Sequence record: OR670491.1
Length of the DNA: 64,000 nt
Reading direction: 5' to 3' (one strand)
The notes beneath the pieces were generated by a model. The model made no database searches. It was not told where the DNA came from and saw nothing but the letters and a program-made list of their open reading frames with translations. The translations under genes and the position numbers were made by a program. Below, piece by piece: positions 210 through 60,000 of this stretch. The stretch's first letter is position 1, and every line of letters begins with the position of its first letter.

Positions 210-575
210 ATGTTTAGTAAGTATGAAGAATCACTAAGACATGCACTTGAAGAAAATATTAACTTCCAATTTTATAATTGGGAAAACCAAATGAAACTTT
301 GCTTTCAGTGCACGGAAGATGAACACACTTCTGAACAACGAGAAGTTATAACACACGTAACGTTACAAAAAGATCTTAGTTCAATTCATGTTGAAGTTAC
401 GATATATTATACTTATGGTGTAGAAGAAGATGAACCAGATTATGCGGGTACTTCATCTGTTCCATTGAACGAAGAAGCATATTTTCAAATGAGTACTGTT
501 CAAGAACCACTGTTCAGTTATGATTTTTATAAGTTTCTGTTTGATGAATTCAAAAAACTTCGAATTAATTCTTGA
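210..575 (+). CDS. hypothetical protein, FQxS-motif family
   Basis: 121 aa; C-terminal EEAYFQMSTVQE motif shared with 12 other ORFs in the window. Confidence 0.8.
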   Translation: MFSKYEESLRHALEENINFQFYNWENQMKLCFQCTEDEHTSEQREVITHVTLQKDLSSIHVEVTIYYTYGVEEDEPDYAGTSSVPLNEEAYFQMSTVQEPLFSYDFYKFLFDEFKKLRINS

Positions 576-600
576 CTAAATAGTTCAGTACTGATAAAAT
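572..600 (+). promoter_or_regulatory. sigma-70-type early promoter
   Basis: TTGACT-17 bp-TAAAAT; spacer contains CAGTACTG; the -35 box and spacer are identical to the promoters at 1126 and 4106. Confidence 0.8.
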
Positions 601-741
601 GGTAAGGCGTGGAAATATGTTTACAGTAGTTACATAGTAGCCTGTACGCCCCACGTCAAGGTAGCCGAAAGGCAAGTTAAAAAGGGTGGTTATAAAGCTG
701 AATTAACAGCGGCGTTTAAAAGCGTCACCATCCATTTTTTT
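601..741 (+). ncRNA. candidate structured small RNA
   Basis: ORF-free, directly after a promoter, ends in a T-run; stems GGCGTGG/CCACGTC, GCC-GAAA-GGC and GGGTGGT/ACCATCC, the last enclosing two hairpins. Confidence 0.45.
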
Positions 742-757
742 AATTAAAGTTGGTGAT

Positions 758-1129
758 ATGAGTGTTAAAGACATTTCAAAGTATGAAGAGTTTCTTAAAT
801 CATTTTTGAATTCAGAATTAACGACCGACCATACCAATAACTGGTGTCAAGATAATCCAGGAATTCGCATTTTCAATGGATATGGTGAATCATTTCTTAT
901 AAATGACGATGAAATTGTTTTTGAATCATTTGAAGAAATAAAAAGGACAAATAACACTTTACGTGATATAATAAATAGTATAAATGCTCAATACATTACC
1001 TTCAAGCTAAGTGCTGATGAAGAAGATGAATTTCAGAAAAGCACAGTATATGAAAATGTGTTTCCACATGAATTAAATTCTGTGATATTTAAAGTGTTGG
1101 ATAAGGTTTTTTCTGAAAATAGTACTTGA
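758..1129 (+). CDS. hypothetical protein, FQxS-motif family
   Basis: 123 aa; EEDEFQKSTVYE motif. Confidence 0.8.
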   Translation: MSVKDISKYEEFLKSFLNSELTTDHTNNWCQDNPGIRIFNGYGESFLINDDEIVFESFEEIKRTNNTLRDIINSINAQYITFKLSADEEDEFQKSTVYENVFPHELNSVIFKVLDKVFSENST

Positions 1130-55754: not shown

Positions 55755-55762
55755 ATTCCCTC

Positions 55763-56965
55763 CTATTGTTGCCATAACTGCGTTGGCATTAATGTTAGTG
55801 TAGTAATACTATAAGTGCCATCAGGCAATCTACCACCATTACCATTCCAGCCACCACATGCATATAATTTATAATCTTTAGTAATTATTATGGTTCTGCT
55901 CCAATCTTTAGATGCCATAAGAACATTGTCATAACCACCACTTATTGCATTAAGATTAAAAATATTCCAAGTTCTAACTAATGTATTAGTTCCATTACCT
56001 TCTTGACCATATGAGTTAGCACCACTACTTCTAACATATGGTGCGTATTGTGCCATAGGTGCACCAATTGATGCATTTCCCATATTACTTGGACAAATAA
56101 AAGTACTGTACTTACTTACATCAACCGTGACCGATGTGTTCCTAATTGGTGTTAGCTGATTTACAGATGTAGTCGTACCATTACCAGCTTGTCCAGTACT
56201 GTTAACCCCGCTATAATATACAGACCCACCAGTAATAAACCACCAAGTAACATCGTATGTAGTACTAATATGTTCTACATTACTAATCACGAATTTGTTC
56301 AAATATACAACAGAACTACCACCACATCCACTTTCACCAAAGTTATCCTTACCACAAAACCATGCATCTTTATTTGATTTGATATAGTGCGTTCCTTGTA
56401 ATGAACATGCCATATGTGTAACTTCACCCATATTAGTCATAACTGTTAGTGTAGGTATGGAATTTTTATTACCAGACCCACATTCACCATTGGTATTTCT
56501 TCCACACGCAATTACTCTACCATCGGTTAATAATATTCTAGTACTTTCACCTATATATACACTCTTGATCATATTAGCCATAACACCAATTTTATTAAAT
56601 GAAGCAGTAACATCAGTCCATGTTCTCAAATAACCATTAACAGGTGTTGCATCTCCATAATCAGAAAATGCACCAACCGACCCAGTGTAGTATATTTTAT
56701 TATCCAAATCAATCATCAATGAACCTTGAACACCAAGCCAAAAGGCTGCACATCGCGTTGCAAGTACTGTAAATGACGCAACTGCTGCTGAATTCCCAAG
56801 ACCAAATTGATAAAAGTTATTACTACCATAACCATATAAAGTATTAGTTGGGCTATGTAGATACATACAGTTTGTATAATGTTGTTGTAAAACATTTGAG
56901 AACTCTATTGGTTCTGGCCCTGGTGCAATATTCGCGTACTTAACCATTCTAGCAAAAGGTAACAT
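55763..56965 (-). CDS. RCC1/BLIP-II-like protein (MLPF family)
   Basis: MLPFARMVKYAN; IACGRNTNGECGSG. Confidence 0.8.
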   Translation of the reverse strand: MLPFARMVKYANIAPGPEPIEFSNVLQQHYTNCMYLHSPTNTLYGYGSNNFYQFGLGNSAAVASFTVLATRCAAFWLGVQGSLMIDLDNKIYYTGSVGAFSDYGDATPVNGYLRTWTDVTASFNKIGVMANMIKSVYIGESTRILLTDGRVIACGRNTNGECGSGNKNSIPTLTVMTNMGEVTHMACSLQGTHYIKSNKDAWFCGKDNFGESGCGGSSVVYLNKFVISNVEHISTTYDVTWWFITGGSVYYSGVNSTGQAGNGTTTSVNQLTPIRNTSVTVDVSKYSTFICPSNMGNASIGAPMAQYAPYVRSSGANSYGQEGNGTNTLVRTWNIFNLNAISGGYDNVLMASKDWSRTIIITKDYKLYACGGWNGNGGRLPDGTYSITTLTLMPTQLWQQ

Positions 56966-57066
56966 ATTTTCCTCCTTTATTTGTTATATCATATTTACCC
57001 CAAAACAAAAACCCTTGACAACCTTTCTGGACTGATGTACAATAGAAAGAAATTAAGGAGAAATGT

Positions 57067-60000
57067 ATGAACAATTCAACAGATCACTACCAAGAACTTA
57101 GTCAAAGTACTAAGAACTATATGAGCTACATGAACGCAGAAGATTTCGCAGTCTTCCTCGGAAAATTCTGTGCAATCAATACCCTCAAAAAAAGTACCAG
57201 TACTACAAGTGTACTTATGTTGAATTGCTTTATAGAGAACATCCTTGAGGAACTTCAAAGCCCTGACGAAAGTAAACGATTCATGAACCTTTTGTTACTG
57301 GCCTCTATATGACTCAAGAACAAATTATGCAGTACTACCTATGTGCTATATCAAAAGAACATCTGAATAGCATAGGGCATCAACAAATTATACTTGCAAA
57401 TGCGAAACGTTCGGCACTTCTGCTTAACTCCATCAGAAATAACCTCATAAGGAATTTTCTGGAAGGTAACGAATCTATGCAGTACTATTTCATCTTAACA
57501 CTACTAATCGAGTACTAAATGAATAAAGAACAATTATTTCAGTACTATAAAAGTACTCTGTCCAAAGGTCTACAGGAAAGTATAGCAGTTGAGTCTGCAA
57601 TACTACAGAACCTTAATGCAGTAGAATTCACAAACAGAATCACCAGGCACGCACAAAATGCTTTACAAGGACATGAAACCTTGAGATACTATCACATCAT
57701 CGTGCTTTGTATGGAGGTATAACAGAACAAATGAATCCAGAACATCTAGAGTACTACAAGACATTCATGAACCACAAGGATCAGTACAGTTACAATACTG
57801 CTATGGGGCATTTTCGATACCATACCAAAAAAATGCAAAAGCACACACTAACACTATGGACTGTACAAGCACAACGAGACGAACTAAGATTGTGTGCTAT
57901 AATTAAAATCCTGAACATCTAAGGAATACTATGTACGAGCACAAAGAACAGTACTTAAACACTCTACCTAAAGATATACAAAGAGCATTCCCTTGTGCTC
58001 CGTGGGATTTAAACAGTAAATGGGGTTTTATTGAGTTCTATAACGATGTATGTATTGTACTGGAAAGTAAGTCCCTCTCAATGCAGTACTGTTCAATCTT
58101 GAACCTAATTTTTAAGTACTAAAACTATGCAAACATTCTATACAGATAGACTAAGCCTTAGAGATACTTTTATGTACGAAACCTTTGTTAAGTACTATAA
58201 CTTAGGTACTCCAATTACAAAGAATATTAATCTACAGCACTGCACACACTCAGCAGTACATGACCACGATCCGTACAGATACATCTTAGCCCTTTTAAGT
58301 ATATAAGGAACACTAATGAAACTCAATAATTACAGTAAACAATACCTAAAGCATTTTAAGTACCTCAAAAGCATTAAGGCTGAATCTATCACCAGCAGCT
58401 ACGTTTACAGCCCTAATGTACTAAAACAATTAAAGTACAAGAAAGAAAAAGTATCAAAGAACCTCAAAAAGTTTCTTAAGCACAAAGACGCAAAGATTCA
58501 GTACTTGAACATTAAAAACGATCATCCAGTACTAAGCCTCAATACAAGTCTAAAGAATCTGGATAACTCTTCATTTATGCTTGAGTTCAATATAAATGAA
58601 AATACTCCAGCGGTTTTTACAATTGCGTATAATAAAGCACAAATCTTTTTAGGTGCAAAAACCGCACTTAAACTCAGTAAAGCACAATTCTGTTTAGGTG
58701 ACCAGTACTACGTAGGTAGTGTACATATTGAACTCGAAAAAGATATGTACTTCGGTAGTACCCACGATAATCCAGAACATAAAGATACTATTGACTTCTT
58801 CAGGAATCTCCCTAAAGAGTATTCAGAAGATGAAATGTTCCAGTGGAGTACTATTATTAAAGACCCACATCTTTGCTACGAAGTGTATAAGAAAGTACAA
58901 GGGATTAAACAAATGATTAAAGAAAATAAAAAAATGTACCAACTCTTGCAGTTCTTAACCGGAGAAAATCTAATTGTTCAAAGACCATAAAGAGTACTAC
59001 AGAAATCAACTCCCAAAGGAATGGCAAATAACATTAGAAACTAACCTAGCACAGATATATACCCAGAAGTTTCTTGCTATGACATGGGAGCACTGCATTG
59101 AGTCAGTACTGAATTCTTCAAATGAATCACAATATCTCAATACTCTTTTACTTGTATATAAATTCTAAAAAGGAATAACAAATGCAATTCCATGAACATA
59201 TGGAGTACTACAGAAAACAACTACCAGAACCTTTATCGATGATAATCGGTTCCAGAAGTTTAATAAGTAATCCCAATTTTCATATGCGTAGTCACTATAA
59301 ATGTACTGCTTCAATTTGTAATGGAACTGCTCACAATGAACCGCACCAGCATCTATACCAAATCCTTAAACTAATATATCAGTACTAAATTATGCACGAA
59401 TATAAAGAGTACTACAAAGATAAAATCCCAAAGTTTCTACAATACCAAATACCAGATGCTGCACTAGGAATAAATGATGTGCACACCTGTACAAGATTCT
59501 ATCAATGCACTGAAAGTTTTCTGGTAGATGATTATGACCAATGCAAGGTGTACTATGTTATTTCACTAATATATAGGTACTAAATCATGCACAACGATTT
59601 CTATATACAAAAACTTATCGACGCTGGCCTGGAAAGCTTCCCGATAAATCCTGTACAAACAAAAGGATTGCACTGGTACTTCATCCCCTGTACTAAAGCA
59701 TGTATAAACCCCAGCAATTACAAGGATCTATACCACAATATATTAATACTCGCATTGAGGTACTAAATTATGCAAGAACACTTGGAGTACTACAGAAGCC
59801 ATCTCCCAAAGAAGGCACAAAGAAACTTCGACCAACAATATATAAACCAAAAGAATCAGTTCTATAATGCATTCTATTCGTCTATGAAAACTATTGCTAT
59901 ACAAGGCAAAGACCCGTACTATAGCATCCTGAACATCATCTTCAAGTACTAAAGCATGTACAGAGACTTCTATATAAGTAAACTTAATCCTGTACTACAA

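Follow-up and report, generated by a model that had tools for sequence, protein, structure and literature searches.

The internal head proteins IPI-IPIII of phage T4 have only a short capsid-targeting/cleavage signal in common. This signal is N-terminal and is cut off by the prohead protease, the proteins that carry it are packaged, and at least one of them is anti-restriction. In Bacillus phage G, about 35 zinc-ribbon copies form a lineage-specific expansion, according to a survey of such genomes (Iyer et al. 2021, PMC7824862). An array in phage 121Q was covered in one sentence of a 2017 paper (PMC5646251), where it was read as tandem duplication.

The family described here is carried by Escherichia phage vB_EcoM_JNE01 (hereafter JNE01), an E. 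coli jumbo phage of 355 kb that belongs to Asteriusvirus and is the source of the window (by which we mean the whole 64,000-nt stretch of record OR670491.1 that was analyzed). A sequence-only reading had grouped 13 ORFs of the window as one family on the basis of a motif near their C termini. All 13 were located, all on the + strand (Table 1), and a family profile splits them from the other window ORFs (E <= 2e-9 for the 13 members, 0.048 for the next ORF). Those in the first 10 kb are labeled hypothetical proteins in GenBank. The count of 13 is an under-count imposed by the bounds of the window, and the whole-genome family comprises ~50 copies: a converged profile recovers 42 members in JNE01, and the combination of profile, motif, and position gives 51 (~9% of genes), with sizes of 100-224 aa. 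For the twelfth window ORF, translation is more likely to start at ATG 44816 than at TTG 44804, because the resulting 213 aa equals the length of database protein P0001.

Table 1. Family members and putative promoters in the window (motif block, the 13-residue conserved motif block)
Feature	Position (nt)	Strand	Remarks
Family member, 121 aa	210..575	+	Motif block nt 468-506; profile E 1.6e-12; shortest in window
Family member, 123 aa	758..1129	+	Motif block nt 1016-1054; profile match
Putative sigma-70-like promoter, 11/12 match	5397..5425	+	5' of tRNA-Thr pair and 5829 gene; consensus scan
Family member, 143 aa	5829..6260	+	Motif block nt 6129-6167; first gene past two tRNA-Thr genes
Putative sigma-70-like promoter, 10/12 match, extended -10 TG	6648..6677	+	Just 5' of six-gene array; consensus scan
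Family member, 140 aa	6727..7149	+	Motif block nt 7045-7083; opens contiguous six-gene array
Family member, 139 aa	7142..7561	+	Motif block nt 7430-7468; profile match; AlphaFold2 model
Family member, 147 aa	7539..7982	+	Motif block nt 7848-7886; profile match
Family member, 144 aa	7964..8398	+	Motif block nt 8273-8311; profile match
Family member, 135 aa	8400..8807	+	Motif block nt 8703-8741; motif Q -> M
Family member, 155 aa	8800..9267	+	Motif block nt 9160-9198; without acidic pair; closes six-gene array
Dispersed family member, 166 aa	22568..23068	+	Motif block nt 22901-22939; phAPEC6 counterpart gp054c
Dispersed member, 190 aa, pI 9.0	28053..28625	+	Motif block nt 28488-28526; phAPEC6 counterpart gp039c
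Dispersed member, 213 aa, basic, pI 8.6	44816..45457	+	Motif block nt 45308-45346; phAPEC6 counterpart gp011c
Dispersed member, 224 aa, basic, pI 9.4	58316..58990	+	Motif block nt 58823-58861

Every JNE01 member lies on the + strand, and the arrays occupy both genome ends and sites near tRNA genes, with about 24 members at 335-355 kb of the record and four more at the record start. The tandem group of six that had been noted earlier is contiguous from 6727 to 9267, with stop and start codons overlapping at most junctions. Strong sigma-70-like matches were found upstream of the family arrays by consensus scan, although the total of such matches in the scanned region is no higher than expected from shuffled sequence.

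F-Q-x-S followed by T, L, I, or V occurs in 12 of the 13 window ORFs. The claim that the motif is present in all of them holds for these 12 and, with FMDST (M in place of Q), for the 8400 ORF, but both acidic residues are missing from the 8800 ORF. Likewise, the motif is near the C terminus as claimed, but its F lies 29-50 residues from the end in the window ORFs rather than the 25-45 first given. When a strict pattern (two acidic residues, two of any kind, F, Q/M, any residue, S, and T/L/I/V/F) was applied to all six-frame ORFs of the genome, it was found 32 times, whereas shuffled ORFs contained it 0.18 times on average and never more than twice. Among the 51 members, in which F at position 0 and S at +3 are set by the anchor pattern, position -5 is T (33%) or S (24%), positions -4 and -3 are E (67% and 63%), position +1 is Q (88%) with M as the sole substitute (12%), position +4 is T (51%) or L (41%), and position +5 is L/V/I (93%); positions -2 and +2 are free. 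Some orthologues have R or C at the position of the motif S, and R is found there in many orthologues of the 758 ORF. Both types of replacement, Q to M and S to R or C, favor packing over specific polar recognition. As judged from these sequence comparisons, strong constraint on the motif and the reality of the family are supported.

An exhaustive profile search of 1.84 billion proteins returned 39 matches, 38 of them to proteins of 87-224 aa in which the motif is 28-65 residues from the C terminus (with one exception, at 111). The 39th match, to a 3305-aa protein, has no matched stretch and was rejected as spurious. The motif was not found by this search on otherwise unrelated or larger proteins, and on this point the sequence-only reading is supported. 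Pfam yielded no match below E 0.02, and NCBIfam only scattered single-member matches, each to a different family. No significant match was obtained in the PDB, either by sequence (E >= 2 with the A3 profile and 0.41 with the A2 profile) or by fold (best E 0.045, at TM 0.33). In PHROGs, the 13 members are spread over about 20 separate groups, each of unknown function, so this library contains the proteins without uniting them. By tblastn, the family is present in jumbo phages of Escherichia, Klebsiella, Salmonella, Pectobacterium, and Cronobacter; phage 121Q has 40 members in a near-continuous 28-kb array (160.8-189.2 kb), and Klebsiella phage RaK2 has at least 13 members with the same motif in 50 kb. 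On sequence grounds, this is a lineage-specific multigene family of RaK2/121Q-type enterobacterial jumbo phages.

Two members were modeled with AlphaFold2, one of them with high confidence. The 121-aa protein of the 210 ORF is predicted to form a single compact domain (pLDDT 88.1, pTM 0.80) with the elements H2-15, E19-23, E27-36, E44-53, E58-67, E78-83, H88-97, and H104-120. The motif corresponds to H88-97, the middle one of the three helices, which follows strand 5, precedes the final helix, and has a mean pLDDT of 92-95 in 10-residue blocks. The 7142 ORF, from another subfamily, gave an identical order of elements at pLDDT 62.7. Full-length matches were also obtained to BFVD models from GAP32, RaK2, CBB, and fHe-Yen9-03, at identities of 12-32% and with TM-scores that reach 0.91. 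Across the family, the sizes of the N-terminal parts cluster around 95-115 aa, and an analysis of hydrophobic moments lends support to an arrangement of helix, strand-rich part, and helix, with an alpha-type helix after the motif in 44 of 51 members. The amphipathic helix proposed to follow the motif was thus recovered, both in the two models and by this analysis. Most likely, the predicted domain common to the family is one compact alpha/beta unit made of a helix, a five-stranded antiparallel sheet, and two further helices; as the N-terminal subfamily profiles reveal no homology, one fold for all ~50 members is an extrapolation. It is well supported by the models that the motif would comprise the first of the two C-terminal helices plus its N-cap residue. 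The two free motif positions are spaced i, i+4, and so fall on one face of that helix; the conserved positions would cover the rest of its circumference, and helical periodicity suggests that F, Q, and S are buried.

The N-termini had been described as poorly alignable, which is true at the level of sequence. In leave-one-out profile searches, none of the 51 N-terminal parts reached E < 0.01, an all-vs-all BLASTP comparison of these 51 parts detected only one pair, and hhalign comparisons of six subfamily profiles of the N-terminal parts gave probabilities <= 6%. Similarity between N-terminal parts within JNE01 is detectable only in the 5829 and 6727 ORFs, where it is weak, and in one other pair. 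In 121Q, five neighboring members are 26-53% identical over about 100 N-terminal residues; because N-terminal similarity has been kept between adjacent copies, duplication evidently involved whole genes, in tandem.

The gene content of a syntenic locus after tRNA-Thr differs among relatives (seven members in JNE01, six in A4, and five in 121Q), and positional counterparts there are 23-33% identical, compared with 43-83% for the flanking genes. The 5829 ORF has positional orthologues in both A4 and 121Q, with identities of 57-59%. The 758 ORF, found by tblastn at 61-97% identity in 33 phage genomes, is the best conserved member in the genus. For some members, the 7142 ORF among them, close orthologues occur in just two phage genomes. 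The 58316 ORF has positional orthologues in most Asteriusviruses at an identity of only 37-40%. It is therefore supported that the members vary greatly between related phages and behave as accessory, fast-evolving host-interaction genes.

Most members are acidic (median pI 4.6), and 75% have a pI below 5, compared with 33% of other ORFs of similar size; the N-terminal extension of the 28053 ORF is basic. In the congeneric phage phAPEC6, the orthologues gp011c, gp039c, gp054c, and gp291c are absent from the list of 62 virion proteins, and this list has no entries in gp079-148 or gp348-548, the estimated ranges of the arrays, although virion mass spectrometry may overlook small, low-copy proteins. 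It is well supported that the four mapped orthologues in this phage are not virion components.

With a little more belief than doubt, we favor a ~50-copy family of one fold that serves as an intracellular binder repertoire. It is well supported that the family grew through tandem duplication of whole genes and then diverged very fast, which erased sequence similarity except in the motif helix. That helix, packed between the sheet and the neighboring helices, would act as a keystone of the structure and not as a free docking peptide; the disposition of free and conserved positions on its faces, and the replacement of Q by M alone, fit such a packed role. Early expression of the genes from host-type promoters is probable, and the variable surfaces of sheet and loops probably bind different host or defense targets, so that the phage would carry diversified intracellular binders or inhibitors on one scaffold. 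The function is probably that of a host-interaction repertoire. The sequence-only reading had instead proposed variable domains that are each fused to a constant docking module. Its family, the constraint on the motif, and behavior like that of host-interaction genes are all supported, but the modular architecture is not, given one compact predicted domain, full-length BFVD matches, and whole-gene duplication. The outcome that it had named in advance as speaking against it, one full-length fold with the motif in the core, is largely what structure prediction returned.

As a rival explanation, the sequence-only model would make the conserved helix pair a common docking surface and each paralogue an adaptor or effector, whose variable part binds a target of its own and brings it to one shared partner. 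Candidates for this partner include hub proteins of the host and phage machines, for example the ClpP protease that the phage encodes. The motif is far more conserved than the remainder, at polar and acidic positions too, in ~50 paralogues and several phage genera, and ClpP is encoded by the phage and all its relatives, although shared ancestry alone would be expected to produce this co-occurrence. We consider such docking unlikely, since the model is one compact domain rather than a linker-joined module, the motif helix is not an autonomous unit in it, the profile never matches the motif outside this context, and both Q and S can be replaced. Conserved helices could also serve self-association, with homo- or hetero-oligomers acting as an assembly or a combinatorial regulator. 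An amphipathic helix follows the conserved one in nearly all members, and many co-transcribed paralogues would coexist in the cell, but the monomer model is already compact at the pTM given above, and we regard this explanation as very unlikely.

A role of the motif as a signal for processing or targeting, whether a Gln-specific protease site or a packaging signal like that of T4, is highly improbable. The only PDB sequence matches of the profile are His-tag/protease-site linkers in two recombinant constructs (8eqs_C and 9m0a_B), which makes the motif similar to a known recognition site for a viral protease, and hypervariability among related phages is a trait that the genes share with those of the T4 internal proteins. 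However, these matches, at E about 2, are at chance level, and the motif is inside a confidently predicted helix of a compact domain rather than in an accessible extended segment. It is also located 29-50 residues from the C terminus instead of at the N terminus, and the phAPEC6 virion list lacks the four orthologues and any entry in the estimated array ranges. ClpP and the prohead protease are the only proteases annotated in JNE01.

As a point against our preferred reading of one fold and many binders, the acidic pair, Q, and S are conserved beyond the usual need of fold maintenance alone, which may reflect a shared functional contact. The motif helix would then serve both in the structure and as a surface for contact, with ~50 paralogues plugging into one partner and their sheets capturing different host or defense proteins; we think this quite unlikely. 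A phage-encoded ClpP-based protease or a host hub would be candidate partners for such a contact.

Compared with known systems, the array of the 2017 paper (PMC5646251) is probably identical to the 40-member run of 121Q, a match made uncertain by a separate 24-member family of 63-90 aa proteins that overlaps the same region of 121Q; unlike the present account, that paper gives no coordinates, motif, fold, distribution, or function. The phage G expansion, as presented in the available part of Iyer et al. (2021, PMC7824862), is alike in having dozens of small paralogues in one jumbo-phage genome and in the suspected role in adaptation or host conflict, but it belongs to a different phage clade, and the JNE01 family is alpha/beta and without metal ligands. 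That part of the survey makes no mention of a JNE01-type family. The BFVD proteins of Cronobacter phage GAP32, Klebsiella phage RaK2, Pectobacterium phage CBB, and Yersinia phage fHe-Yen9-03 (e.g., K4F6J8 and H6X3Z4) are uncharacterized and share the full-length predicted fold (TM-scores up to 0.73-0.91), size class, and phage clade. Three RaK2 entries have lengths equal to those of motif-bearing RaK2 ORFs, and by their models these BFVD proteins almost certainly belong to the family.

The T4 internal proteins are likewise dissimilar small proteins from hypervariable loci with one short conserved block, but the block in JNE01 is predicted to be an internal helix near the C terminus, and virions lack the mapped orthologues. 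Some large DNA viruses of eukaryotes have multigene families, such as the poxvirus ankyrin/F-box-like proteins, that are tandem expansions with a separable docking module and a known partner. By analogy only, they are alike in evolving fast, in residing in variable genome regions, and in being thought of as anti-host repertoires; they differ in that no separable module or partner has been seen in the JNE01 family. If the paralogues do have a shared partner, the family would be to its phages what substrate-adaptor repertoires are to large eukaryotic viruses.

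The DNA comes from Escherichia phage vB_EcoM_JNE01 (JNE01 below; genus Asteriusvirus), an E. coli jumbo phage of the 121Q/PBECO4 type: positions 5000-10000 of the window are 100% identical to 253000-258000 of record OR670491.1 (355,583 bp), which places the window at record positions 248001-312000. All 13 of the motif-bearing ORFs listed in the sequence-only reading are present, on the + strand, and most have a purine-rich stretch immediately 5' of the start codon. For the twelfth, the ATG at 44816 is a more likely start than the TTG at 44804. GenBank describes the family ORFs in the first 10 kb of the window as hypothetical proteins. 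F-Q-x-S followed by T or an aliphatic residue occurs in 12 of the 13; in the ORF at 8400 (members are named here by their start in the window) the Q is replaced by M, and the ORF at 8800 lacks the acidic pair. The motif is indeed close to the C-terminus, although the distance from its F to the C-terminal end is 29-50 residues rather than the 25-45 estimated initially. A strict form of the pattern (two acidic residues, two of any kind, F, Q/M, any residue, S, then T/L/I/V/F) occurs 32 times in six-frame ORFs of the JNE01 genome vs. 0.18 times expected from shuffling. When the window was scored with a profile made from 42 members from across the genome, the 13 ORFs had E-values of 2e-9 or lower and the next-best ORF 0.048, so the window holds exactly 13 family members.

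The remainder of the deposited record was also scanned, with an iterated profile that converged on 42 members in the genome. Adding + strand ORFs of 100-240 aa that carry the motif at the expected spacing from the C-terminal end brings the number to 51. The family thus accounts for ~9% of the 583 annotated JNE01 features (about one gene in eleven), and all members are on the + strand, mostly in clusters (see table). An ORF without the motif (record 340070-340615) adjoins family members and scores weakly against the profile, and its N-terminal part resembles that of the member at record position 341064 (BLASTP E 2e-6); it may be a degenerate member.

Sequence searches of Pfam, NCBIfam, and the PDB with the family gave no significant match, and two word-indexed protein searches recovered just six and 20 proteins, on contigs of up to 355 kb, each with either no name or the label "hypothetical." When 1.84 billion representative proteins were searched exhaustively with the profile (E ≤ 0.001), 39 matched, of which 38 are 87-224 aa long; the other, a 3305-aa protein with no matched stretch, is spurious. 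The F-Q/M-x-S core is complete in 36 of the 38 and lies 28-65 residues from the C-terminal end in all but one. Nearly all proteins that the profile matches are thus small and motif-bearing. Matches to unrelated proteins at the same rate, which the sequence-only reading had named as an outcome that would count against it, were not seen. Using tblastn, relatives were found in jumbo phages of Escherichia, Klebsiella (RaK2, K64-1, Muenster), Salmonella (Munch, 7t3), Pectobacterium (CBB), and Cronobacter (GAP32). RaK2 has at least 13 members with the same motif in one 50-kb stretch, and the type phage, 121Q, has 40 in a single, nearly continuous 28-kb array.

The information in an anchored, ungapped profile sits mainly in 13 columns, with F (position 0) and S (+3) fixed by the anchor pattern itself. 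In this profile, position -5 is T (33%) or S (24%), -4 and -3 are E (67% and 63%), -1 is hydrophobic (82%), +1 is Q (88%) or M (12%), +4 is T (51%) or L (41%), +5 is L/V/I (93%), and +7 is D/E/N (65%), whereas -2 and +2 are free. The S is replaced by R in many orthologues of the 758 subfamily and by C in one orthologue of the 5829 member.

As had been claimed, the N-terminal parts are poorly alignable, and it is the motif region alone that aligns at the sequence level. Leave-one-out profiles of the N-terminal parts detected none of the 51 JNE01 members (0/51 at E < 0.01), BLASTP among the same 51 parts linked one pair only, and hhalign comparisons between six subfamily profiles gave probabilities of 6% or less. 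The lengths of these parts cluster at 95-115 aa. Five adjacent members in 121Q share 26-53% identity over ~100 N-terminal residues. This retained N-terminal similarity between neighbors shows that whole genes were duplicated; their N-terminal parts then diverged past recognition.

The predicted structures bear directly on the proposal that a constant docking module is fused to variable domains and plugs into one common partner. An AlphaFold2 model of the 121-aa 210 member, based on an alignment of 39 relatives (mean pLDDT 88.1, pTM 0.80), places the motif in the first of the two C-terminal helices plus its N-cap residue, within one compact domain (elements in the table). The model of 7142, from another subfamily, has the same element order (mean pLDDT 62.7), with confident C-terminal helices and a low-confidence sheet. 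An approximate analysis of hydrophobic moments is consistent with a helical start, a strand-rich middle, and a helical end. Searched with Foldseek, predicted viral structures yielded full-length matches to uncharacterized proteins of GAP32, RaK2, CBB, and fHe-Yen9-03, at 12-32% identity and with TM-scores of up to 0.91. Against the PDB, the 210 model returned nothing convincing (best E 0.045, TM 0.33) and the 7142 model no match below E 1. Weak likenesses to frataxin, p32, Pur-alpha, and the CapZ alpha subunit were set aside, as they reflect only the sheet-plus-helices architecture. Judged from helical periodicity only, the two free positions of the motif helix, spaced i and i+4, should lie on one face, with conserved positions filling the rest. 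The exchange of Q for M fits packing.

The structural premise of a separate docking module is thus unsupported by the models. The idea still retains some probability, since conservation at the polar and acidic positions of the motif goes beyond what folding alone would explain. The best-supported reading is that of one fold, tandemly duplicated and very rapidly diversified, in which the motif helix alone cannot change. The motif is unlikely to be a cleavage or packaging signal. The protease-site idea was rejected because its likeness to a viral protease site comes down to matches, no better than chance, with the tag linkers of PDB constructs, and because the motif forms a helix. Packaging was rejected on the virion proteome of the congeneric phage phAPEC6, for which mass spectrometry identified 62 proteins (PMC7247149): the phAPEC6 orthologues of four family members (gp011c, gp039c, gp054c, and gp291c) are absent from that list, nor does it include any protein from the gene ranges to which the arrays map (ranges estimated via shared landmarks). 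On the best-supported reading, the family proteins are intracellular and not components of the virion.

Related phages differ strongly in their family members. The syntenic locus after tRNA-Thr has seven members in JNE01, six in A4, and five in 121Q, and positional counterparts there share 23-33% identity (57-59% in the case of 5829), compared with 43-83% for the non-family genes that flank the locus. The 758 member is 61-97% identical across 33 genomes and the 58316 member 37-40% identical in most genomes, whereas 7142 and one member of the right-end array have close orthologues in two genomes only. Such strong turnover between close relatives suggests that the family is likely to take part in the conflict between phage and host. 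The proteins are mostly acidic (median pI 4.6; pI < 5 in 75%, vs. 33% of comparably sized other ORFs). Basic exceptions are the three longest members in the window (pI 8.6-9.4), in the case of 28053 because of a lysine-rich N-terminal extension. Judging by how small and acidic they are, by where their genes lie, and by their turnover between related phages, the proteins probably form a repertoire of binders or inhibitors aimed at host or defense proteins. The arrays are preceded by strong sigma-70-like matches, here considered putative promoters, but across the whole scan such matches are no commoner than in shuffled sequence.

Positions of family clusters, predicted structural elements, and other genes (window, position in the stretch; record, position in OR670491.1)
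Feature	Position	Strand	Basis
Family clusters, plus single genes	record 231-235, 244-257, 335-355, 0-3 kb	+	profile/motif scan
Elements of the 210 model (residues)	H2-15, E19-23, E27-36, E44-53, E58-67, E78-83, H88-97, H104-120		AlphaFold2
tRNA genes (Ser, Met, Met, two tRNA-Thr)	window 1165-1432 and 5660-5813
565-aa ORF, no Pfam match	window 1440-3137	-
HNH homing endonuclease gene	window 3515-4084	+	GenBank annotation
Sigma-70 family protein, regions 2 and 3	window 17958-18920	+
Nine tandem paralogues (358-447 aa), RCC1-like repeats	window 45697-56965	-	PF25390, PF00415, PF13540
ClpP protease subunit	record 28365-29060
Run of very small genes (~40-130 aa)	record 312-330 kb
Second small-protein tandem family	record 330.9-336.0 kb; 121Q 155.7-175.2 kb

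Several features of the surrounding genome should be noted. The tRNA genes directly adjoin family members, and the family likewise lies beside tRNA genes in A4, 121Q, and RaK2. The homing endonuclease gene separates the tRNA cluster from the family arrays, and the 565-aa ORF sits amid small + strand genes. The phAPEC6 counterpart of the phage-encoded sigma factor is annotated as belonging to the RpoD subfamily. Eleven RCC1-like-repeat proteins, several of them detected in virions, were reported for phAPEC6 (PMC7247149). The phage ClpP is 65-96% identical in same-clade jumbo phages of Escherichia, Klebsiella, Pectobacterium, and Yersinia. The second tandem family (16 copies of 70-95 aa in JNE01, 24 of 63-90 aa in 121Q) is directly upstream of the large family array and partly interleaved with it. 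In the long run of very small genes, spacers are roughly 60-250 bp, in contrast to the tightly packed family arrays. In that region, which precedes the large array, Tandem Repeats Finder detected no repeats at the DNA level.

We did not find the motif, fold, or distribution of the family described in the literature. Hua et al. (2017) devote one sentence to such an array, which is probably either the family array studied here or the adjoining small-protein family. No database names this single family, which makes up about one in eleven JNE01 genes and is also present in 121Q, RaK2, GAP32, and CBB. Recognizing it unites roughly 20 separate PHROGs of unknown function and explains a substantial fraction of the genes that lack annotation in these phages. 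The invariant helix makes members easy to find and offers a way into the structural study of constant vs. variable parts. The family also provides a concrete case of jumbo-phage genome growth by tandem duplication followed by extreme divergence, with the scaffold held fixed.
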